The position numbers and the translations under genes were made by a program. 64,000 bases of DNA from Chlorokybus atmophyticus (lineage: Eukaryota > Plantae > Mesostigma and Chlorokybus algae), in NCBI GenBank assembly GCA_009103225.1, contig RHPI01001010.1, positions 62,001-126,000 of the forward strand. Direction: 5' to 3'. The notes beneath the pieces were generated by a model that worked only from the letters and a program-made list of their open reading frames with translations, did not search any database and was not told where the DNA came from. Position 1 is the stretch's first letter; each line of letters opens with the position of its first letter. Shown here piece after piece: positions 2,897-53,020 of the stretch.

Positions 2897-5178
2897 TCAT
2901 TGACCCAACGCCAACACTACTTCACTCCAGTGCGGGTCACGCGCCCAGTTAAAACCGCTCTCAAAGATGAGGCCCTGCATACATGGGCCAGCCAATGCTG
3001 TCAAATAGCAAAGACCACGCGTGCGAACTGTGCTTAAGATAAAAGGCAGTGCAAGCAGTAGCTCTGATATCACCTGTAGAGTGTTGCAAAGAACAATCGT
3101 TTCGTCATGCAGAGCCTTCGACTGCTCCAACAGCCTGGTGCAAGACAAGTGATGGGTTTATGCTGTTTGAGGCTGCTACTCACTGACTGTGCTGTTTGGA
3201 TGCATTAGCTTTCTTGCTAACTAACTAGCTGAGCAATTGGAAATTGTGCAGCAGACAAAGGGACAAGCCACATACTGCCAATGACACGCGTCTTGACATG
3301 CTTAATGTATTGGAGGCATGACAGAGCATGTTGACGACCATTCTGACCTTTGCCTTTGCTGTGGGGAGCTGGCTTCATCGCTTGCAGCGTGCCGTCTCTC
3401 TGCCTTGGCTTCTTCAAGTTGGCGGTAAAGTTGCCTTACACAAGGCATTGCATCTGCGCATTCGCATGTGTGATGTGCAATACATTCATTGCTTGCAAGA
3501 CAAATATTACACAGGTCATCACATAGTGCCACCAACCTGCTCGCGTCGCGCGCACGCTGAACAACTCGTCATTAAGTTGTGCACTGCGCGTGTGCAGCCG
3601 CGCCAGCTCTCGCATCTGAAGGTGCCACAGACCCAGTCAACATGACGCAGCTGCTTTTGGCCAAACGACTACCCATGCTCATGGAGACGGCATGACACAA
3701 ACAGCATGCAACAACCATGACTTGTTCTAGCACCTTGTCATTGCGAAGCGCCAAAACGGCAGGCAATCTGCAAACTGAACAACAGTCAAATGTTGTTACA
3801 TGCATGTGTGTGTATGTGTATGGCCCAACGATATTGGACGCCAATAGGCACAGGCAATGCGCTGTAAGAACAGTATGACACATCTCAGGCATGTGATGCC
3901 ACTATTGTTACAGGGCACATGCGCACACTAACTTGTGAACATGCTGCATGCCAGAAGCATGCACGCACGCAAATTACCCGTGCAGCAGCTGGTTGAGTGG
4001 GTTGCTGGACTCTCTGCCTTCTGTTAAGCAGGACTCAAGCAGAGGCGCTTGTCGCAGTCTGCATATGAACCACACTCAGTGCACGCGGCATCAACTGCTC
4101 ACGTTCAACATTTACGCCATGCCCTGTGATGACGAACACATGATGTACCTCATAATAAGCAATGCCTGTCGCTTTGCACGTGACTCTGCCTCTTCCACAG
4201 CTTCCTGTGTAGCAGTCAAACCGTCACGCACAAGTTGTGCGCTCAACTTGATGTCGCCATTGCATTTGCATGCAAGGATTGTGCGCGTCTTCGCATGCAT
4301 GACCACTGACTTCAGTACTGTTTGGTGTCATTTATCAACGTTGTTGTGAAAGTTGTAAATATGCATGGCACATTGAAAAAGCGTACTTGAACACGCGTGC
4401 ACGGCATTGCTATACCTCCAAGGCTGCAAGACGATCACGGACAGCTTCCTCATCATGCAAGTCCTGCAGCTCCGGATGCTCGGCCTGCAGATTTGTTGTT
4501 CTAACATATGCACACATACCCAAATGCACGCTTGCAACCTCCCAGTGTGCACAGCTGTAGAAAGATACCTACCAAATCCTGCAGAACCCGCAACTCTCCA
4601 TTGTACGCATCAATCTGTGCGGAAACACACACATGCGTTATCTGCTATACATCACAAGCAGCGTGCATGCATTGCTGTATCGTTGCTTGTATGGAGCTTA
4701 AGCGACTTACTGGCAGAGTGTAAACCAGGTAATCAGTTGTCAACTCCCAACATTCAGCATTGACACGCAGTACATTTAAGCTGCTGCATTGACTCAAGAC
4801 GTAAACCATTTCTGCCAAAGCCCGTCACCTGAACTTCTCTACGCAACAACGCACGAGAGTTAAGTTCGGCTCTAGTATACTGACGCGCCAATGAAACACT
4901 ATTAGCAGCTAAGCAGCCAGACAAGTAATACACAAACCAGCCTTGCGAGCCCTGCTCGACTCACTCACTCACTCACTCACCTGCTCCGTGAGGGCGTCGT
5001 TGCGCGCGGAGGCCTCAGCGACCCTGCGTCGGAGCTCCGCCACGTCAGAGTCACCCTCGAGGCCCCGGGCGACGACGGAGCGCACGGCCGCGGCGGGCCC
5101 GCGAGACAGCACCGCCGCTGCCGCAGCCTTCACGGCTGCCACCGCCTCGCCCAACGCATCCATGCTGCTTCCCCGCAT
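2897..5178 (-). CDS. CENPH: Centromere protein H (CENP-H/Fta3/Mcm16)-like, 10 exons, 271 aa
   Basis: Exons 5178-4981, 4614-4573, 4484-4416, 4204-4149, 4058-3978, 3767-3722, 3615-3537, 3453-3348, 3134-3074 and 2974-2897 all have GT-AG boundaries with matching phases. The protein is coiled-coil and ends ETIVLCNTLQGLIFESGFNWARDPHWSEVVLALGQ*, resembling the CENP-H C-terminal signature (human, recalled: TTVIQHVFQNLILGSKVNWAEDPALKEIVLQLE). HTRSAQLNDELFSVRATR also aligns with QQESWDLEEKLLDIRKKR. Confidence 0.78.
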
Positions 5179-5850
5179 GCAGACTGCCGCTGGTTGTCGT
5201 ATTACTGTCGTTGCACTGTGGTTGTTGTTGCGATGACGTAAGTACATAGCCCTAGTGTACAGCAACAGTGTGCATGCCATACGGCAACCCGAGACTTTGA
5301 GTACATGCAGCAATATAGGTGCCCGCACACGCAACTTGTTTATGGCTTGCAAGCCACTGATCAAACTAGGTAATGATTAAGTGGAACAGCAAATCATTGT
5401 GCTATAGTTGACTGTTCTTGTTCCATATTGGTGAAATGGTGACCCAGTGGTTGGGCTCTGTTACACAGACTGTTTGCTGCACAACTGGCGAATGGTATGG
5501 TGCAACTCTGTTGGACTCTTCTGACTTTCTCAACTCGTCCACGGCACAACATAAACCAACCTGCCTGCACCTCACCGCAGAAGATCACAATGGAGACATG
5601 CATAGAATCACAGGTGTTGGTAACTTGCATGTACAGCCCAAGCAGATTGTGCAGCATGGAGGCAATGTAGCAAAACTGGACACCTGGGACAACAGCATGC
5701 AGAAGAGCACTGCGCGGATGGTGCTCCCTGATAGCGTCTCAATATTGCAGTTTATTCCTGGTCATTGAACTGACTGTACAAACAACAACAGTGGCGACTC
5801 CAATTGGTGTTGAGTATGAACCCATCGTCACCTCGCAACTATGCTGAAAT

Positions 5851-8800
5851 TCATATGAACATGTTCTGCAAGTCTGCGGTGCTGGGCGTGCGTGGATGGA
5901 TGCCGTTCTCGTTGAAATGGCTCCGCAGTCCGAGCCAGCACTTGTAGTAGTCTTTGTCAAGGTGCGGCGAGGTCAGTGCGAACTCCGTCACGCGCGGCGT
6001 GAAGTTGGTCTCGAACATGAATGCGAGCGTGTCGGGAGGCAAATGCCGAGGCTGGTGCTCGTCCTCGGACACCGCGCGCTCAAATGTCTCGGTGTCTGGC
6101 CCGTGAGGTGTCATGTTGCAATGCAGACTGGCGCCACCAGGCAAGAAACCCTCTGCCTTTGCCTGTCGCACAGAATCACGAGATGCGCTATCACTGCTTA
6201 GCAAAGCTCCATAATCCGACCAAGTTCATGCTGAGCAGCAGCAAGCTGCTAAGTTGCAGCCTGCTTAAAAACGGCGAGCATGACTGTGACTGGCATACCT
6301 CATAGACGCCTCGTATGAGTCCCATGAACTCGCTGCTGCAGTTGCGGTGGTAGTAAGGGGGTCTGAAGGTGTGCTCTGCAACTGTCCACCGTGGTGGGAA
6401 GATGACAAAGTCCGCAATAGCCATTCCCTGCACAGGGAGCTGTTCAGCCACAAGACCTCATGCATGTGGGTGCAGCAAACTGACCGACATGCATGTGCAT
6501 GAAGTTCACCCAACACTTGTTTACATGTGCAAGTGCAACAGCATACCGGTACAGGGGATGGGCAGGTGAGCACAGTGAAGATGGATGGATCAGGATGGTC
6601 AAATGACACAGTGTTAACCGCGCAAAACAAGCGAGTGTCATACTGCAGTACCAAGACAACAATTCAGCACTGGGAACCGATCCGAGGGCAGCTTCAGGTT
6701 GCATGCTAAGCATACAATTCAATTAACCCACCAACATAAAGCAAATACACGAAACACGGTGTCACCTTGTAGGGTGCGTAATTTCCATGCCATGCCACCA
6801 CGTTGAATGGTGAAAAGGTCTGCGTTGCTTCAAATAGCCTTCCCTCAAACTTATGTACAACGAAGAAGCTTTCGCACACGCGGTCCTCGTACCATGCAAT
6901 TGGGGTCTGAAAGTCCCTTGGGTTGGCAAGGCCATTCGCACCTATCACATTGAACCATGAACATGGTCGACGGAAACTGTACAAAACCTGCTGATGCTGT
7001 GCTCTTGGGACGGCATTCCTGGTCTTCATATGCGTTTACTAATTGTATATCAAAGCTGCTGTACCTATTGGCCCAAGGTCGGGCAAGGTGAAGTGGCCGC
7101 CAAATACTTCAAGGACATATCCACGTGCTGGTTCGTTCCCAACATCAATTGAGAAGCGCATGCCTTGTTGGATGACGACCACCTCAGCAGGCAGCACGCA
7201 CAGCCGCCCAAACTCCGTGGTAATGTGCAGCACTGCAAGGACATCATCAAGTTGAACAACATGAGACTCCAAGTTTGCACAGCGCTTGTTCAACAATGGC
7301 TCAGTTGGCATTACCTCCACTTTCAGGCACAATCAAAAAATCTCCATCTGCGTTTGCCATGCATTTATCCTCCATCGACTTGTTTATTGCATACCTGCAC
7401 AAGCACTGACTGAACCTCAGAATCCAGCTCACTTGCTGTGGGACTCTCAGGACTGCTGTAATGATTTGAAAGCCCTAAAGCAGGAACTTCCTTGCCAAAC
7501 AAATCCCCAATGATTGTCATGCACATCACACACAAGTAACATTGCCAATGCGGTCTCACATGTGGATGGCGAAGCCAGACTTTGTTGACGTGCTGCCTGC
7601 CCCGGCAAAAGTAACCAAGCCTTCGACGAAGTCGGTGGGTGTCTGTGGGTAAGGAAGAGGTCGCCACCGCAACTGGTTTGGTGTGATCGTTTCATTTGAA
7701 AAATCGCTCCTGAGAAGCGTTGACGACTTTACAGGCTTGAAGGGCTCGTGTGTCACCGAAGGTCGTATGCGGTACAACCAGCTGTACTTTGAAAGTCAGC
7801 TTGGTCTCCACAACATGGCCACAATCACAGCTTACGCACTCACTGTGCGACACTCACCTTCGCTGGTTGTACTTCCTCGGTACTGTGAAGGCTGTGCCGG
7901 ACAGCTGCTCAGCGTACAGCCCGTATGGGCAGATGCGCGGATTGTTCTGCAGAAAAACCCCAATTTCGTCATAACAAGTATGACAGGTTCAGATCAGAGT
8001 TGGCTCAGCATTGCAGGATGCAGTCAACACGAGGTGCGCGGCTACGCTTGACAGAAGGCGACAGAGTCCGGCCTAGGTCCCACTATAGAGCCGCAGGAGG
8101 AAAGGGGGGGGNNNNNNNNNNNNNNNNNNNNNNNNNNNNNNNNNNNNNNNNNNNNNNNNNNNNNNNNNNNNNNNNNNNNNNNNNNNNNNNNGGGGGGGGC
8201 TTGCTCGAATGCTAGTTATGCTGTGCATGATTATGGGATGTCAGCCGCACACAAGAGCCAGGCCATGGCAGCGGCGATCTGCCTTCAATACAGACTGACA
8301 TAATCGGCAGGCAACGTTGTGCTTGTTTCACATTTAACGCCACCTTCGCAACCCAACGACTATGAGAAGAGAGCATCCGTACTGACCAGCTTGCGAGCTA
8401 ACACGTTACTGTAGTCAACTGCTAGTTGAAGAAATGAAGTAGTCGATGTGTATGCGTGATGGCAACCGCTATACAGCAGTCAATGGTTCTGCAGCTGTTA
8501 TCATCGTCGACAATTGATAGGAAGGCAACAAACAGCTGAGCAGCACTGTCTGAGACAGGCTTACAACTGATGTCGTAGTCAGTCTGAAGGTCGGCAGGCA
8601 AGCCGACGCACACGTGGCTAACCCACAAAATCCTGGCTTAGGGGTAGACTATGTGGTCAACTTTGGCCGCTGCACACACAAAGAGCAACCGAAACCAGCA
8701 GTAGACCAAAGTTGATGAACCTCCAACTCAAATAAACACACCTGCCCGGCAGGCAGGGCGTTTGGCAGCGCCTCACTGGCGAAGTGGTTGCCAAACCCGC

Positions 8801-8894
8801 TCTGGTAAGCAAGGGATCTCCAGGGGTCGTCCTCCCCGGGCTCTCCGGAAGTGGTCGCCAACACTTCCACCGCCGTCGCCGCCGCCTCGTCCAT
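5851..8894 (-). CDS. HGD: Homogentisate 1,2-dioxygenase, 8 exons
   Basis: Motifs [127 protein letters not shown] and [19 protein letters not shown]. The Fe-ligand His/Glu/His residues are present. Intron 1 contains the gap at 8112-8191. Confidence 0.97.
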
Positions 8895-9407
8895 AACCGC
8901 GCTTTCCCGCCACGCCAGCAGCTGCAACAACTTGACGCTGACAGCAAGACTATATAGACGTGGTGTCGCGCACTGCGGACCGCTGATGCATGCCGCGAAG
9001 GGGCAATCGTCCATCAGTCAGCTCAGGAAATGGTGAAAATGGCTACACCTGAATGGTGAGTGTGTGCCACGTTGGCGGCGGCGGCGGCGGCGGCGGCGAT
9101 GGCAACGTAGGTAGCTGACGAGGTCGTTGGTGTCACGCCGGAAGGAGGCGTAGAGGCCAACGTATAGGCAACGTTGCGTAGATGGAGAGAGCGACATTGA
9201 CGACAGCAGCAGCAGCATCAACAGCCGCAGTTTCACGCCTCGCTTTTCCCGCCTCCAGAAGGCCTGTTTGGGTGGACACAGGCGGCGTGATTAGGGCTGT
9301 GCTGGCGAGGGTGGGAGTGGGTGCAAGGCCAAGGGGATATTAACTTGTGATGAGCTTGCGTGTCATGATGGCTGTTGCCTGTGGACGGTCGTAGCTCGCC
9401 GCGAGCT

Positions 9408-12045
9408 ATGGAGTGGAGAAACTCAGCTGTTGCGGACTACAGCAGCATGCCACCGCTATGGACAGAGCACAAACAGCTCCAGTCCTCTCATGCACGCAAA
9501 CCGTTATCTTCACATGTGCAGCGGGCACTTCAAGAAGGTGCTTGATTGGATGGGCTTTGTCTGCCGGGGAGAGCACTTTCAAAGGCGATGTCGCCTCGGC
9601 TAGACAATAACAACGAACACGCACATAAGCACGTCATAAACATCGGGTGCAATTGCAAAATTACATCCGGTTTGTTATGCCTGCTGTACGTCGTGGTTCG
9701 GTTGGAGTTCTCGTGTGTCTGCTTGATAGCAATGCACTGACTGACTCAGGCTTGTATTGATGTGATGTGCTGCTTGCAGCGATGCATGTAGGGCCAGTCC
9801 TGCTGCGTGTACTGCACCTTCCAACCGGGAACAGTGGCGAGGACATGACCGAGCACGAGTTGAGATGTATGTTGGCGCGTTGGGTTGAGGCGGAGATGGT
9901 GCGGTACATAGCGCTATATTCTCAGCAATTCGCAGTTGTTACTTGCAACACGCTTGGTGCGGCTATTATTGTTGGCAGAGACTTGCAGGTGAGTGCAGGC
10001 TAAAGCCCGAGCACAATGACAGTGTGTGACTGTGATAGTGCTCGTTGCTGCAATACTGCGTGATATGTTGTACTTTGCATGCACTGACTTTAGCCCAACC
10101 ACTGGATTGTGCCCTCGTAAGCCGCTTCATTGTTACATGAATACATACCAGTTCGGCTGTGTGTTTGGGCGTTTACGTCTATGTGCCAGTGACTGCCCTG
10201 CTTGGTGTTTCCAATGCAAAGGTTATTTACTTTGCCTGCAGAAGCAATTTCAGTATTTTCCTATGGCGGTGCAGCCGTCATGCTTTGACATCGGTGGCAT
10301 GCTAGCCCTTGAAGTGTTTGATGCAATCACCAAAGCGCTGGAGGGAAAGCCCTACAAAATGCCTGCCAGGTGCATGTCACAGTGTGAGTCACCCAGGTGC
10401 AAGTACTATATTTTGCCTATTGTGCATACATATATATGCTGCATCTAACAGGCTGGCACCAAGTGGCTCGCAAGAGCATTTAGGAAAAGCGGCCATAGCC
10501 CGTACAGCAACGCCAGAGAAGTCACGTGAGCTGGATGCGGACATGGATATGGATTCACCCACTAAGGGTGCCATCAGTCGTGATCCAAGCAACTCACTCG
10601 AGGAAGAGCTGCATGGCCGCGATGCACCATTGGCATTGCCAGACGCATTTCAACAAGCAAGCGCACAGGTGCCAACAGTAGCTGGCAGTGAAGAACGTTT
10701 GCCGACAATGCCAGTCGAGGAACATGTTCCAGCAATGCCAGTTGCGGAACGTCCATGGTCACCAGTGAGTCCACCAACAGCAAGTGGCGGCACACCCCCC
10801 CTCCCACCATTGCCTGCTGCGCCGCCTCCTGCAACGCCACCTCCACCTTGCCTGACTCCTCCGTTACCTCCTCCCGTAAGTGTGCTAGCCTTACCTGGTG
10901 CTGTCGACATTTTGGAGCCAACTGCAACTGCAGTCGCTGACTGCAATGCCATTGCGCCATTGCCAAATGGCTGTGACGGCCACGATGAGAAGTCCTTGAC
11001 AACATTAGGCGAGACAAGGAACATTGACACACCCTACCACGAACCTCAGGCTCCTGGCTCTGTCGAGAAGTTCAAAGACATGAGTTCTTTTGCTGAAGCG
11101 TTATCGTTAGCAGCGAAAAGGTGGGCGCAGCGCCTGCCAGAACCTTCGCAACCTACCCCTGTTGAGGAGAACCATGCGCAAGGGGCGGGTGATTCCTTAC
11201 AGGAAAAATGCACAGTGGTGAAGCCAAACCCTTGTATAGTTTCCCCCGTCGCAACAATACCTGCTAGCACTCCTGATGTTAGGTCTACCGTTGTTAGTGT
11301 ACAGGACAAGGCAGACCCAAGCGCACCAGGTGCCAGAGCCGGGAAACGGTCAAGAAAAGAGCCCGGCACCTATAGCCAGCAGGCTGATAAGACATCCCTA
11401 CATGCGCTACCCTGCACCACGGGCCGAAGCGCTCGTCACAACTCATGTCACTTCAGCACTGCAGAGGGGTCAGAACCGGTTGCGCAACGATTGAAGCAGG
11501 AGGGCGAGACAGATTCTCCTGGGTCTGGACGGTCTGTTGCTGTTCAGCCGATGAAGAAGCTGTGCACCACCAACTCAGAGTCCAAGTGGCGTGTCAATGA
11601 GGACCTGCCTGGTGGTCGGCGGACATCACCTTCGCCCTTGCTGCCTCCCTTGTTGGAAGACTTTCAACCAGCGATTGCAATTGATGCAGAGGATGACGAC
11701 AACGCACCCTTCTGGCGGCCGGCATCATTGAGAATCTATGACAGGCCCAGTTCACGAAGGCGCAGTGCAAGTCCTGAACTTCGGAGACGCCATTGGACAC
11801 CAGACAAGTTAAGGCGTGGTAGGCGTCATGAACATCGACATGCAAGCAGTCCACGACGGCCTTCAAGGTCTTATCTGCCACGGAGACCAGCATCTCCAGC
11901 AGAGCATCGCAACTCTCTTCGTGACCCGGATGTGCGCAGGCGTAGACTACAGTCTCCCCCGACAAAGAGGGAGGCTGTAGAGGGAGAGCTACAAGTGGGC
12001 AGTCACCATGCAACTTCTACTGAGTTGCAAGTGGAAGAGCCGTGA
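9408..12045 (+). CDS. Uncharacterised protein: small N-terminal domain (possibly RRM-like) plus a long Pro-, Ser- and Arg-rich disordered region; may extend to ~12840 with a SPOC-like tail
   Basis: Phase-consistent exons 9408-9537, 9780-9897, 9979-9988, 10094-10116, 10242-~10369 and a ~1.5-kb exon from 10451 that is open to the stop at 12045. Downstream exon-like pieces (PMWGKWGGGEVLCGLLR; LRGGVDMTSFFNTFTCLPPNFSVEASMWR) could continue the frame if the donor at 11995 is used. Confidence 0.6.
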
Positions 12046-38688: not shown

Positions 38689-40660
38689 TCATTGCGGGCT
38701 TGCAGCAAAGTACACGCCCTCGGTTGCAACCCAGTTTGTGTCCGCTGACTTTTTCCTCATACCGCAGACCTGCACAGAACCAGATGAGTGAAGTGTACAT
38801 CGCCATGACGCACGCACGCATGCGCGCAAGTTGAGACAGGCTGCAGCCGCGACGAAAATAACAACAAGCAAGGTAGCAACAATCCATGCAAACATGCTTG
38901 TTCGTGTACCTCCTGTTGGCCCGCAATGGGCCTCGGGTACTTCTTGTCATGGCTTCCGAGGTAAGCACTCTGCAAACACATAACATCTGAGATAAGCACT
39001 CTGCAGTCAGAAACAAATGAACAGAACAACAATAAGACTGCTGTGCACCAACGCGCCAGTATGATTGCATACCAGCGTTAGAAACAGTGGTTGTGGACCC
39101 CCCCCCCCCCACCCTAACCTAAGCTAGCGCATACAACAAGTTGTGCAATGGCTGGCCATGTGAGAGTATAGTTCAGCAACAACCGAGGAAGAACAAGGAG
39201 CAAGTGATGCTTGTGTGACTTACCATCTCAACATGCAGAAAGCGGACCTTCTGTCCCCTCTCCCAAACACCCTTCCCTTTGTCCAGCTCCAGCTTCCACA
39301 CATCCCCGGTGTCGGAGTTGTTGTCATCGCCAAACCCACTCACCTGCAAAAGAATAGAAGCCAAGTCAAGTCTTTGATGCACCTCAACATCAACAACAGT
39401 CCATCTGTTGGGGTTTCAATGCACCTCATATTGGTTGCTGATGGGAGAAGCGTGGCCATGGCTGTGAAGCCACCTTCGCGTATTTAAGTGCTGCAGTCTG
39501 ATGACAGTGCCGTGCTCGACCTTGTCACCCTGTATGACATGAACAGATAATTAAGTGCTTCAGACACATGATGCATACAGCCAGATTTGCAGAATTATCA
39601 CTTGAGACATTGTGATGATGATTGCACTTTTGTACCTGATTGCTGGTTATTCCGTTTGGAAGATGAACCACCTGCAAGATATGACATTCACACACTAGCG
39701 TCACCATGAGTGAACCAAGACACCAATGGCATGCGGCTGTGTGTGCGTGCGCATGTGCGCATGCGCGCGTGCATGTCATCACACAGCATGTGAATGCGAT
39801 CCCGTTTGATGTGTATTGTGATGTCGGTTCACTCAACACAATGCACATGCTGTGTTGGCTCACAACATGTGTTAAACCAACATATTGTGACGTTTTGTAC
39901 ACCAACTCGTGAATCAATCCATTTTACAACCAACCAACATGAAGCAAACGTGTGCTTGTGGCGCAAGGCCCAAAACATGCAACTGTGCAGCTCACCCAAT
40001 AGCTGTTGGTGTCATCACCGCCTGAGAACCCAGTCACCGACTGCTGGCCGCTCCCCGACCCGTAGCTGCGCAACCACACACAGTACACTTGAGCTCATGC
40101 TTGATCGTAGTGTTAAACTGTGATGCACAGGCAATCAGTAGCAATCGGGGATCCAAGAGTAGCAACTTTATACTTGACGAAACTCGTACTGTGCTTCACT
40201 CAGCATCGTACCAAATTCGGCATGCCGCACAAATGTGCTTATATAATAGAGCAATATCAATTGACAGCATGCACCTCATCGCCCGTGCGTGAATGCATGT
40301 GACAGCAGCCTTGTTTAACCTGCTTACTTGATTTCATGGGAATGCAGGCGGTAGCCCGTCTTGTCGTGCACAAACTTCACGACGCTGCCAATTGTGACCT
40401 GAAAACAGCAAAGAAGCGTCACGTTAGCCCTGAAGGCTAAGACTCACAGCAGAGAGCATCATAAGTTGCTAAACGACAAGGAAGCTTAGAAAACGCAACA
40501 ATGCAATGCACAGGAGCACACAGTGAGCGGCAGCTTCCAGAAGCCTGTAACCGTCTCTCAGACACGCTCGCTCTGCACTCACCTCCTTGCCCTCGCCCTT
40601 CGCTGTCGCCGAGGCGACCAGCAGGAGGGACAAGATAGACAGCAGCAACCACGACGCCAT
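38689..40660 (-). CDS. SDF2: Stromal cell-derived factor 2-like ER protein (signal peptide plus three MIR domains), 8 exons
   Basis: Signal peptide MASWLLLSILSLLLVASATA, then VTIGSVVKFVH...RLHSHEI.YGSGSGQQSVTG...DDTNSYW, IRLQHLNTRRWLHSH..SPISNQYEVSGFG...DTGDVW, YL.SHDKKYPRPIAGQQEVCG and WVATEGVYF. Confidence 0.96.
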
Positions 40661-40834
40661 CTCCGCCGCCACCGCCGCCGCTGCTATGGCCACCTAGTCT
40701 GGCCTAGCAAGCCAACTGTAATGCAAGGCATAACGCGGTTACGGACTAAAGTGCCGCTCCAGCCGTATCTCAAATACGGACCAAAGTCACGAAGTACTCT
40801 AAACTACGGACCACAAACTTGAACTGTTGGCCTG

Positions 40835-41530
40835 ATGGAGGCGGCGGAGAAGGATGAGGAGAAGGAGAAGGAGAAGGAGAAGGAGAAGGAGAAGGAGAGT
40901 AAGGTGAAGGAGAATGCCGGTGAGCATGCGAAGGTGACGGAGGTGCTGCGCAAGTTGCGGGCGGCTGTGCAGGCGGTGGACTCCATGCTCGTGGCCATGC
41001 ATGAGGTATGCCGTTTGCGCCTGTGTGAAGCATGACGCAAGCAGGTAAGGCAAGCTGCGCGCGACACAAGCGTTGTACATCAAGCATACAGTGATGCAGT
41101 CTTCAGGGTATGCATCGCATGCCGTCAAGCAATGCATCAGGTATTGCGCAATCGCTTGACGGCATGCATTGCACAAACCAGTGTTTGCACGCTTGGTACA
41201 CACAAGTGCGTGTTTGTGAAGCGTGACGCGTGCATCATCAGCGGTGCCACCCGCAAGGCACGACTTTCTCGCGCATGCTTCATGCATAACAGCATCCCTG
41301 CCTCAGAAGCACTCATGCTGGTCTGATGGCTTGCATTGATAGCAAACATTTCATGCTTGCTGATTACGCTCGTGCTCGTGCACAGAGACAAAATGCGTCC
41401 GTTTGTAAACACGACACTTGCATTATTTTTCATTCTTTGTCAGGATCTGCTGGTGGCTGCGGACAACCTGGACGCAGTGGCCGCAGCCAACGACGACTGG
41501 CGCAGCTTTGTTCATGCCAAGAGGCTGTAG
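40835..41530 (+). CDS. Small 85-aa helical protein resembling DASH/Dam1 complex subunit Dad2, 2 exons (40835-41005, 41444-41530)
   Basis: The spliced ORF is MEAAEKDEEKEKEKEKEKEKESKVKENAGEHAKVTEVLRKLRAAVQAVDSMLVAMHE/DLLVAADNLDAVAAANDDWRSFVHAKRL*, with a canonical phase-0 intron. The core aligns without gaps to Dad2 as recalled (S. pombe KLETLTDGSEAVATVLNNWPSIF; S. cerevisiae EMGMNADSVAQLMNNWDSII). The gene is fairly secure; the family call is less so. Confidence 0.6.
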
Positions 41531-42637
41531 CAAAGAGGAGCCAGCCAGCCAGCCAGCCAACCAAAGCAGCACACAAACACAGCCACATACACACACAGAC
41601 ACACCTATGCATGCAGGTGACCAACACGAATGGTATGCGTTTGTGTTCCATCTATGTAGTCTGATAGTACAACAGGTTGCAAGCTGATGCTGCGCTACAC
41701 TGATTACTTTACATTTCTGTTGGCGGCAAGGTAGTTGTATGGTGAGTGTTGCATGGTGCATGTTAAGCGATTGTTAGTTGCTCGTGGGGGTGTTGTGGGG
41801 GCTGCGTATGCAATGCTCTCTCTCTCTCTCTCTCTCTCGTATGCAGTTGCGCACACGCCCATGGTCAATGTGTCACGTTATACTCACAACTTTGTTCTCT
41901 GCTGCGGGTGGCATATGCAAGCGGGCTGCAACGGAGGTGATCAGCTCTTACAGCACCAACTCTCCTTACAGTTGCATCTAACTCTATACAGCTGTGGCCC
42001 ACAGCAATATCTGACACCATTGCAAAGTAAAGCAAGGCACTCTGCAGTAGACTCTCTGCAGTGGTGGTAAATGTGTCCAACCACTGCCAGCTACATTCGC
42101 ACCATGCATCATGCAAGCAGTAGTTATGGTCTAATCGCTAGAGTCCATTGTGTTTCACATAAAAGCTGTGGTCAGCAAGTCACAACCAGCAGCAAACAAA
42201 TAGTAGCACCAATTGTCACAAAGAGAATGAAGAGAACAAAGCAACAAAATGGCCCTGCTTATACTCACCAATTGGAGAGAAAAGAAAGCAACACTGTCAG
42301 AAAGGGGTCAGAAATGAAGACAAGGACACGCAGCAGCAAGAGGAGTTCCACGTTGACGCTGTGGCGGCGGCGGTGGCGGCGGCGGCGGTGGCCTAACAGC
42401 GCGGAGAGGAGCACGATAGCGACGTCGTCGACGACGACGCCAAGTAGCAAGCTGAAGGCTCTGCAGTGACGACCGCTCGGTGGGCCACGACAACAAGCCC
42501 CTGGCCGGCTGAGCTCTCTAGCAAGGAAGCTCTGGTTGCCGCTGCCGTTGAGGTGGAGGTGGAGGTGGAGGTGGAGGTGGTGGTCGTCTTTTTCCATCTA
42601 CGTACAGGCCAGCCTTGTGAGGGCCGTCAGTGCCGGC

Positions 42638-44321
42638 ATGGCTGAGCACGAGGCGAAGGAGCAGCAGCAGGAGGAGCAGCAGGAGGAGAAGGAGCAGCTG
42701 ACTGGGGCTTCTTCGCAAGCAGAGGCGAAGGAGGCGGCGTTCGTGCATGCGCTGGACGCCGTGGAGGAATTGCTGGACGCCCGCCGCAGACTGCAGGACC
42801 AGCTGGCTTTGGTGCGTGTATGTGTGTCTCAAAGCCACAACACGATAGTGAAGTGCAACCAACGTGCAGCAGCCAAGCAGCCAACAATGCAACAGCTTTG
42901 CGTGCTCGGCCAGAGTTACGCAGGAGTGTATGCACAACACACATGCATTGAGCTTGCAATTGAAGCGGATGACGAACAACTCTAGCAGCATCGTGTTGAG
43001 GGTTACCGTTAGGAGTTTGGTTTATTGTGATGTTAATTGGCAAACACTCTCAACAACTGTGCAATGTGCTTCCGGGAAGAGTTGTCTTGAGTTTGAGTAT
43101 AAGTTTTTTGGTTCATGTTGTTGTGTTTGCTGTGTGTGTCCCTGCATGGTGGGCGTAATGCTATACCATGTAACCTTTGCTGTGTGTATCTGATGTGGTG
43201 TGGTTGTGCATTCAGGGTTTCATGAGCCTCGCGCGGGCGCGTTATTCCCTCGGCGCGGGCAGCCTCTCTCAGGAAAACTACGACTACGCCTCCATGGCCG
43301 CCACCACTGCCACCATCCGCGTTTCCGGTGCGTGTGTTGTACAATTGACAACATGCGCTTGTGTGTGTGCCTGTTCGGGTTTGGTACGCTACTTGCTTGT
43401 ATTGTGCATGTTAGACGTGTGCGTACATGGCTTAGTGTAGCTGCTAACATTACAACAATTGAGCTTCTGCCGCTACTATGTGCACAAGCACATACTTAAC
43501 ATGTCTCTCTGGCCGCCACAGGTGGCACAGGATCTTCATCAGCAGGGGTTCATGAACACGAGCATGCACAGTCTCCTTCTTCGCCGGTCTTCAGCGTGTC
43601 TTCAAGGAGAGAAAATGCTGCTGACAGCGACAGTGAGGGCTATGAACTTGATGAAGTTGCAGTGCAATCAGCCTTTGGGCTGCGCAGGAGAGCCAACGTT
43701 GCCGGTAGGTGTGAGAAGATGTCTTATGCAACAGCACGGATTGTTAATATTATGCAGTGACTTAAGCGAAGGCAGCTTTGGGAGAAGACATGCACACACA
43801 CATATGCACATGCTCACGCAATCACTCATTCAGTCATCACTTAGCTGTCAATTATCAGGTGCATCAGACAGGGCGAGTTCGTCCGACTTGAGTGATTGGG
43901 AGAAGGTGGACTTACCTCAAGAGAAGAAAATATTGGAGGATGTGAAAGATGTTGATGGCAGGCCGGCAGTGCCGCCCATACGCTGGTTTGGGGTGCTGGT
44001 GCCACCCGCCATGCGTGAAGCGCAGCAGCAGTTCATCAAAGGTAAGGACTCTCTGGCATGTTACCTTGCCACACGCGTGCGCGTGCACACATGTGCGTGT
44101 GCGCACTCATGAGTATGCACGTGCAGTGCCTTCCACGGCACATGCGTAGTTACCGAACAAGTTGATGACATTGTCTCCTCGCTCTCCAACATTGGTTACG
44201 TGTTGCAGCATTGGAGCTTGTTGCTGAGGCCGCCACTGCTGCGGCCCGGTATCAGACCAGCAGCGGGTTGTATGAGGAGTTATGCGGAGAAGACGGGGAG
44301 CGGCTACCAAGTGCTAGTTAG
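42638..44321 (+). CDS. CCDC115: V-ATPase assembly factor CCDC115/Vma22, 5 exons
   Basis: LDAVEELLDARRRLQDQLAL/GFMSLARARYSLG...Y (family GWLSLAKARY.MG), PIRWFGVLVPPAMREAQQQF (family PL.WFG.LVP.SLR.AQ..F), and a last exon ALELVAEAA. Confidence 0.88.
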
Positions 44322-50314: not shown

Positions 50315-53020
50315 ATGGGCGAGCAGCAGCAGCAGCAGCAGCAGCTGCAACATGAGGGGGTTCTGCAGGCGGGCGCAAGTGCCTCCCAAGGCGACTCGCC
50401 GCTGCGGGCATCTGCTGCGGCGCTGCGAATAAGCTCGCCTTTAGACGCAGGCCCTCCGGTAAGTACTCACGATTGGCATGCAAGAAACTTGTGCACAATG
50501 ACTGTACTTTATGCAGGTAATAGATGAAGCAGCATTCAGCACTTGTATAAATATCATTAGTAAGCTTAGATTCCGTATCCTCATCTGTACAACTTGACTT
50601 CTGTTTCAGTTATGTGTTACTCGTCACACACAAGAACTCACTGTTTCTTGCTTACGACCAGCACAGTGTAACAAGGTAGTTGTAGGGCTGCGTAACATCT
50701 GTGGTAGCTGCCCAGCTTGTAACAACAACATGCGCAGTTCTATGAGACAGCATGGTGCTGGGATGCTGGCCTGTTCTGTCAGTCTGTCAGTCTTCCCAGC
50801 AACAAGAATGCCTTGCAGCAGGCTCTCGCAAAAGGGTCAACATGAAATCAGGAACATGGTTACAGTAGCGTACCGTGGCGCTTGATTCAACAAGTTAACT
50901 TGTTGCATTGCTTGCATTGCCACAAAAAGTGTTTACCATGGCAGTCCCCCAACTGTGCACACAGCTGAGAGGTTTTTGCAGCGCTTTGGGTAGGACTTGT
51001 ATGCAAGGATCAAATTGCTATATTGCGCAGATCAAGACACCTTCCAGGCCGCGTTACAGCGACCGTTTTATTCCAGCACGCACATCCTCCAACCTGAGCA
51101 GCTTCATGTTGGACATCCCGTCACCAAATCCTGCGAGCGCGGTGAGTTGGTTGATCCATGGTGCACTCATGACATGGTTTTAGAAGCAACGTTTCTAAGT
51201 ATCCAACTGATCACCATGCATTGTCGCAGATTGGCACGCCCGAGATTCGTGAGGACGGGTCTGCGGCGTACTCGTCGCTGCTGCGCACAGAGTTGTTGGG
51301 TTTGGACGCACGCTCACCGGGATTGGAACGAGCCTCGTCCACTCCAGCAGGCACCTCATCAGCGCTGCTTGACGCCGCGCGATCCCCGCTGGGACCGGCA
51401 AGGAATCTGTTCAGGTTTCAGTCGGACCCGTGCTCAAATAAAATCGAGTCCCCTTTCTTGCTGTCGCCTGTTAACACTGAAAGCCCTCTTGGAGTCAATT
51501 ATAGCAGTCCAAGGCGCTCCATGCGGAAAATTGCTCGATCACCATTTAAGGTGGGTCTAGCATGAGTGTTTGCGCTCATGTGCTTGTGTGGACATGCGTG
51601 TTATTGTCCATTTCTTGTTCATCTCCTATACATGTCTGCTGTGTATGGAGTTAACAGCACACAAACATTGTCTTAATGTAGGTATTAGATGCACCGGCAC
51701 TGCAGGATGATTTCTACCTCAACCTGGTAGACTGGTCAGCGCACAACACATTAGCTGTAGGTTTGGGCACTTGCGTGTACTTGTGGAGCGCGTGCACTAG
51801 CAAAGTCACGAAGCTCTGTGACCTTGGGCCGAGCGACAGCATCTGCTCTGTCGGCTGGACTCAACGAGGCACATACCTTGCAGTAGGAACCAACCTTGGG
51901 GAAGTGCAGATCTGGGATGCTGCACGGTGTAAAAAGGTGACTTGAACTGCACATATGCTTGCATACCTGAGATGAATGTAGACGGCAACTCTTAACTGCT
52001 ATGTGGCATGGCAGGTGCGAACCATGGGTGGGCATCGCACAAGGGTGGGTGCGTTGGCGTGGAACTCTCACATGTTGTCTTCGGGAAGCAGAGATCGACA
52101 GGTGTGCAGCCACACAAGAATAGTGTTGCTGGCATGTTGTTGCAATGGCTTCTTTCAGTTGTTGACGTTTCGTTGCCGTTCAGATTTTGCAACGAGATGT
52201 GAGGTCCAAAGAAGACTTCACCAGCAAGCTTGTTGGTCATAAGAGCGAAGTGTGTGGCCTCAAGTGGTCCTATGATGACCGCGAGCTGGCGTCAGGAGGG
52301 AATGACAACCAGTTGTTAATATGGAACATGTCATCAACTTCCCCAATCCAGGTGTGCACGCGCACGTTGGTGTTACTTACATGCAACAGCTGTTGCCACT
52401 GTGTGTTTGTTGGCTGCGTTAACATGTTGTTGGCTTTCTCTGATTGGTGTTGCGCAACTTGTTTGCAGAAGCATACACAGCATACGGCGGCAGTCAAAGC
52501 TATTGCCTGGTCGCCTCATCAACACGGCCTGCTAGCCTCAGGCGGTGGAACAGCTGATAGATGCGTGCGCTTCTGGAACACTGCAACGAACTCTGCTTTG
52601 AGCAGCATTGACACTGGCAGCCAAGTAAGCTGAAGAGGTCCATCTGATTGAGCAACAAGACACACGCAAGCATCCGCTAGCGAACATGCACAGAGGCATA
52701 TGATGGTGAAGCTGACCTCTTGTGGGCAGGTGTGCAACTTGGTTTGGTCCAAAAATGTCAACGAGCTGGTTAGCACACACGGGTACTCTCAGAACCAGAT
52801 CATAGTGTGGCGGTACCCGACCATGACAAAGCTGGCGACGCTGACGGGCCACACGCTGCGGGTGCTGTACCTCGCCATGTCCCCGGACGGGCAGACCATT
52901 GTGACCGGCGCCGGCGATGAGACCCTCCGCTTCTGGAATGTCTTCCCCGGCGCAAAAGCGCAGGGCTCCGTGCACGACTCTACGGCGTGGGGACTCGCAG
53001 GGCGCATGCAGATCAGATGA
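50315..53020 (+). CDS. CDH1: APC/C co-activator CDH1/Fizzy-related (CCS52), WD40 protein
   Basis: C-box [37 protein letters not shown]40 repeats, [67 protein letters not shown] and a C-terminal IR tail (RMQIR*). Confidence 0.98.

Follow-up and report, generated by a model that had tools for sequence, protein, structure and literature searches.

An 85-codon gene, split between two exons and apparently unannotated, is confirmed as genuine, spliced and transcribed in the 64,000-nt stretch of Chlorokybus atmophyticus DNA that was analysed here and is referred to below as the window. As to its product, we lean, though without great assurance, towards a small helical protein for which no family was found and whose likeness to Dad2, a subunit of the DASH/Dam1 complex, is due to chance. 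The features of the gene and of its immediate surroundings are collected in Table 1.

Table 1. Features of the 85-codon gene and its upstream region (positions are those of the window)
Feature	Position	Strand	Description
TACGGACYA, three copies (40740, 40775, 40805)	40740..40813	+	Repeat families D2 and D3; candidate promoter element
Exon 1, coding part	40835..41005	+	57 codons; ATG with an in-frame stop upstream; GC3 0.88; RNA-type contigs
GAGAAG-type microsatellite within the coding sequence	40847..40897	+	Repeat family D1; encodes (Glu-Lys)n, residues 5-21
Intron	41006..41443	+	438 nt; GT..AG; 51% GC; in-frame stops; splice joints in contigs
Exon 2, coding part	41444..41530	+	28 codons and TAG; GC3 0.76; carries the Trp-centred motif and forms the second helix half
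DAVAAANDDWRS	41471..41506	+	Similar to the best-conserved segment of the Dad2 domain (esVasvlanWds); compared by hand
3' UTR, minimum extent	41531..41777	+	Collinear with the genome; three contigs reach 41726-41777

The preliminary description had placed a two-exon open reading frame of 85 codons at 40835–41530, and its coordinates proved exact; the core sequence that it quoted is likewise present in the translation. The evidence for transcription comes from the contigs of four public runs (X1–X4, from two studies of 2013 and 2021), which are of a type presumed to represent RNA, are all filed under one organism label and were aligned to positions 40600–41800. Each of the four runs contains a contig whose splice joint leaves out exactly the 438 nt of the intron, bounded by GT and AG, the donor reading CATGAG/GTATGC and the acceptor TTTGTCAG/GAT, and since these intron ends lie on the plus strand the orientation of the gene is fixed. 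In X1 the depth of the spliced piece is 6259, whereas the only contig with the intron retained has 17.8. Over exon 1 the contigs cover 40911–41005, the stretch 40837–40910 being masked as a repeat. Past the stop codon the mRNA contigs continue collinearly with the genome to about 41777, and the short C-terminus of the protein is therefore real, with no third exon missed. The X1 transcript of the gene consists of many short fragments of high depth (40911–41777).

Translation from the ATG at 40835, which has an in-frame stop codon upstream of it, gives a product of 85 aa. No identical or near-identical protein was found in the protein collections searched, which fits an unannotated gene, and a look-up of the 66-aa genomic open reading frame that begins at the same ATG returned no exact record. 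As an exon finder for the window in general, GC3 was too unspecific.

It is very improbable, in our estimate, that the transcript is real while the 85-codon frame is untranslated or functionless, as would be the case for a spliced non-coding transcript or a young one that arose de novo. Such an origin would agree with a frame that is short, partly made of microsatellite and devoid of detectable homologues, but it accords poorly with the third-position GC content of 0.88 in exon 1 and 0.76 in exon 2, compared with an intron GC of 0.51, and with the fact that the frame is the first to open with an ATG after the in-frame stop. The same is true of the differences observed in a close relative present in run X4. 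This variant, 92–95% identical and carrying the same organism label, aligns to the coding part only (40919–41003 and 41442–41531), and the differences listed for it comprise three silent changes and three codon changes (K40R, D74G and R77G). No alignment was obtained over the 3' UTR, which has therefore diverged more than the coding sequence, and the X4 differences may be taken as modest evidence of constraint on the protein. The variant is absent from X1–X3, a pattern that agrees with a cryptic sister species or strain more than with a paralogue; cryptic Chlorokybus species were described in 2021 (PMC8611356).

The region upstream of the gene is distinguished by the motif TACGGACYA, which occurs three times in the 64 kb, all three copies being located here, compared with 0.31 occurrences expected in the 64 kb; none of 100 shuffled sequences reached three. 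The copies are on the same strand, are spaced by 35 and 30 nt and lie no more than 95 nt upstream of the ATG. The motif is a candidate cis-element of a bidirectional promoter, and it differs from AACGG, the core of the plant mitosis-specific activator element. A putative head-to-head neighbour lies on the minus strand (40583–40660), starting from an ATG at 40660 and running for 26 signal-peptide-like codons up to a GTGAGT donor (GT at 40582–40581), in a stretch that was repeat-masked in the contig alignment. The start codons of the 85-codon gene and of this diverging neighbour are 174 nt apart, and the three copies of the motif are placed between them.

Elsewhere in the window a Pfam run was made on 30 other open frames, and a WD40 exon of the CDC20/Fizzy kind was the only clear match. 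The frame at 52652–53017 on the plus strand matches the final 80 positions of the WD40 domain of CDC20/Fizzy (E 3.4e-32) and, judging from this match, is the 3' exon of a cell-cycle gene of CDC20/CDH1 type. On the same strand, the frame at 43459–44112 scores 25 bits (E 2.7e-05) with the C-terminus of Vma22/CCDC115, which is below the cut-off of 28; it may belong to a gene for a V-ATPase assembly factor downstream of the 85-codon one. The open frames 3948–4349 and 4969–5364 gave no Pfam match at E<=0.1 except a chance one to Ter, and the gene there is probably split.

Structure prediction was made separately for each exon. With AlphaFold2, exon 1 alone was modelled as a single continuous helix over residues 2–56 (pLDDT 93), and the 30-aa piece of exon 2 alone as a single continuous helix over residues 2–29 (pLDDT 95). 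Exon 1 supplies a charged, Glu/Lys-rich N-terminus and the first half of a hydrophobic helix (residues ~34–57). The core had been described beforehand as an amphipathic helix; a helix is predicted for both exons, and the amphipathicity is strong at residues 31–51 and weaker in exon 2. Taken together, the predictions suggest that the 85-residue protein would be essentially one long helix, which starts at the N-terminus with a charged, Glu/Lys-rich segment of ER/K type and goes on for about 50 residues as a helix rich in Ala, Val and Leu. The latter helix would be expected to pack, as a coiled coil or helical bundle, on partner helices that belong either to further copies of the protein or to other small subunits, and it is by such packing that the protein most likely works.

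All homology searches were run exon by exon, with query lengths of 28–57 residues and hence with low power. In Pfam, at E<=10, neither exon matched the Dad2 family PF08654, DASH_Duo1 or any other DASH family. The HMMER filters drop matches with E above about 0.1–0.25, which places each exon below roughly 16 bits against PF08654; tests as weak as these do not refute a Dad2 assignment either. The Pfam matches that exon 1 did obtain (DUF3915, RDD1, RRN3 and Atrophin-1) fall in its low-complexity stretch and are below the cut-offs. The alternative that the best matches would be to small coiled-coil families of the BLOC-1/BORC/KxDL type was not borne out, no such Pfam family being found for either exon at E<=10, and this assignment is no better supported than Dad2. 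When the exons were compared one by one, by phmmer, with the whole set of PDB chains (E<=10), no Dad2 chain came up, the power being low at 28–57 residues; the matches at this threshold were confined to a DARPin, RPRD1B, a de novo TIM barrel and a glucanotransferase. In a collection of 5.8 billion clusters, exon 1 had 483 word-sharing candidates, none of them at E<=10, and the exon 2 open frame (region 25–64) had no candidate; both exon pieces were also without a usable match in the ESM Atlas. When a query of 28 residues is compared with billions of proteins, a near-identical target is needed for a match to be significant.

Two repeat families came up in these searches and were rejected. The stretch HAKVTEVLRKLRAAVQAVDS of exon 1 (40922–40987, residues 30–51) mimics the designed-ankyrin consensus HLEIVEVLLK.GADVNAVD, and the E value of 1.6e-05 obtained against a 12-repeat DARPin is misleading, since it sums weak matches to the individual repeats. 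The 30-aa piece of exon 2, searched with phmmer against 1.84 billion representatives, found only two actinobacterial TPR-like repeat proteins, whose repeats read LSVSLDNVGAVARARGDWDRA and are about 50% identical to exon 2. Membership of either repeat family was rejected as a chance match, what is present being half a repeat, in a single copy, within one continuous helix, and the E values arising from the summing of numerous weak matches to repeats. The ankyrin and TPR-like matches show that an identity of about 50% over some 20 residues of these helices arises by chance.

The sequencing depth of the transcript bears on two of the readings of the protein. The contigs have depths of 3390–10617 in X1 and of 29.5 in X3, a run of the same study, which is about 200-fold lower as judged from unnormalised values. 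This gap may reflect strong condition-dependent expression, with the reservation that contig depth is unnormalised. A small helical protein that is hydrophilic and induced under certain conditions, in the manner of stress proteins or hydrophilins, would act on membranes or proteins without entering a fixed complex, and the abundance of its mRNA in one sample would reflect induction. Such a protein would be consistent with this difference, with the Glu/Lys-rich N-terminus and with a gene that appears to be lineage-restricted, having no relatives in the collections searched. We nevertheless hold such a function to be decidedly unlikely: unnormalised contig depths cannot rank expression, the protein is not hydrophilic in its second half but hydrophobic and rich in Ala, and neither exon matched a LEA, dehydrin or similar Pfam family at E<=10. 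For a kinetochore subunit, on the other hand, so high and so uneven a contig depth, unnormalised as it is, would be unexpected.

The Dad2 resemblance itself was noticed in the preliminary description from a motif of the fungal proteins. The motif is genuine: the PF08654 consensus (Table S5 of the cited work) has 120 positions and contains the core dgtesVasvlanWdsvl (PMC10551642). The candidate has DNLDAVAAANDDWRSFV, spaced as in this core when compared by hand, with D, V, A, W and S identical and a D in place of e. When the 64 kb were translated in all six frames, the pattern [DE]AVA-x5-W-x-S was found at a single place, 41471.

A hand alignment without gaps, in which Trp 76 of the candidate corresponds to position 59, covers consensus positions 1–68 and gives 15 identities in 68, compared with about 6 expected from composition by a rough estimate. 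Two good patches, E.LR.LR (residues 36–42) and D..DAVA.....W.S (residues 64–78), fall in the same register. These two features of the hand alignment, the excess of identities and the common register, speak against chance. Among the six capitalised positions of the consensus three are identical (L21, V52 and W59), V takes the place of L31, and neither K14 nor L18 is matched. Immediately before the Trp the consensus v-l-a-n is represented by A-N-D-D, A-N thus standing in place of the hydrophobic v-l, and a conserved Ile seven residues past the Trp is a Lys in the candidate.

The C-terminal part of the comparison is less favourable. The candidate ends 9 residues past the Trp, so that positions 69–120 of the 120 are missing, whereas in the fungal members shown the domain continues after the Trp (consensus positions 60–78), with ~13–50 aligned residues beyond it, and most of them reach PetLVRip (PMC10551642). 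The latter sequence belongs to the C-terminal Dad2 signature sequence (DSS), which defines fungal Dad2 and whose nearly invariant Arg contacts Dam1, Spc19 and Spc34 (PMC10551642); the candidate has no counterpart of this feature, which was defined on fungi only. The shortest Dad2 shown, that of Basidiobolus, is 87 aa long and has 28 residues after the Trp (PMC10551642).

Membership of Dad2/DASH is a reasonable lead, and one that we rate as rather unlikely. On this proposal the protein would be an orthologue of Dad2, divergent and shortened at its C-terminus, or else one of the Dad2/Duo1 pair. It would form an arm helix of a DASH/Dam1 complex retained in a streptophyte alga of early-branching position, where it would help to link kinetochores with the shrinking ends of microtubules. 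The size of the protein and its all-helical prediction from each exon with AlphaFold2 are compatible with such a role, as are the gapless hand alignment, with its identities at L21, V52 and W59, and a core motif that is unique in the window. To be weighed against them are the mismatches at K14, L18 and v-l-a-n, an end at consensus position 68 of 120 that leaves the protein without the arginine motif of the DSS, and the fact that no tool gave statistical support. By our hand estimate, the fungal PF08654 model would give the candidate only a few bits over its whole length, and about one match of such quality could turn up by chance among the small helical proteins of a genome that has several hundred of them. 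Chance similarity of short helices is a more probable source of the likeness to Dad2 than homology. In profile comparisons Dad2 and Duo1 are each other's best match (PMC9998035), and the weak Dad2-like signal could for this reason equally be Duo1.

What is known of the distribution of the Dam1 complex can be read in both directions. The complex has been inferred for the last eukaryotic common ancestor (LECA), with many independent losses (PMC9998035), and the surveys of it included neither Chlorokybus nor Mesostigma (PMC5439489, PMC9998035), which leaves room for a Dad2 in this alga. However, Viridiplantae are reported to have lost the complex (PMC5439489, PMC9998035), and among Archaeplastida it is reported only in some red algae (PMC5439489, PMC9998035). 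No literature link between Chlorokybus and Dam1 was found. The chances are small that Chlorokybus, which belongs to the earliest-branching streptophyte lineage, keeps a DASH/Dam1 coupler in which the 85-codon gene is a shortened Dad2. The inference of a Dam1-type coupler, which the preliminary description had suggested for this alga, needs the other subunits, those expected to co-occur in the genome being Dam1, Duo1, Ask1, Dad1, Dad3, Dad4, Hsk3 and Spc34, usually in the absence of Ska. For the time being the 85-codon gene does not count as evidence that the green lineage has a Dam1 ring.

Were it true, Viridiplantae would gain their first Dam1 complex, and separate losses would have to be assumed in chlorophytes and in the line leading toward land plants. 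A Dad2 in this position would add weight to the view that the complex was inherited vertically from LECA and lost many times, and would provide an organism of the plant lineage in which the use of Dam1 and of Ska could be compared. The firm result is more modest and consists in a small two-exon gene that is well expressed and conserved between close relatives; its lack from the collections searched illustrates how such genes escape annotation.

Comparison with known systems places the protein beside several kinds of small helical proteins and repeats. It resembles the ankyrin and TPR-like repeats in local matches of 20–22 residues with about 50% identity, but differs from them in having a single copy of half a repeat within a continuous helix. 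The small subunits of BLOC-1/BORC are, like it, short, helical and free of other domains, although neither exon matches their Pfam families at E<=10. In Duo1, the structural paralogue of Dad2 from the other DASH arm, a helix of the same type carries a conserved Trp; neither exon has a match to Pfam DASH_Duo1. In comparison with Dad2, the protein carries a 23-residue Glu/Lys-rich N-terminal extension and is without consensus positions 69–120 and the DSS; at the same time it is, like Dad2, small and all-helical, with a length near the 87 aa of the Basidiobolus protein, and, in the comparison by hand, its D-x-x-[DE]-A-V-A-x5-W-x-S corresponds to the d-g-t-e-s-V-a-x5-W-d-s of the Dad2 core.
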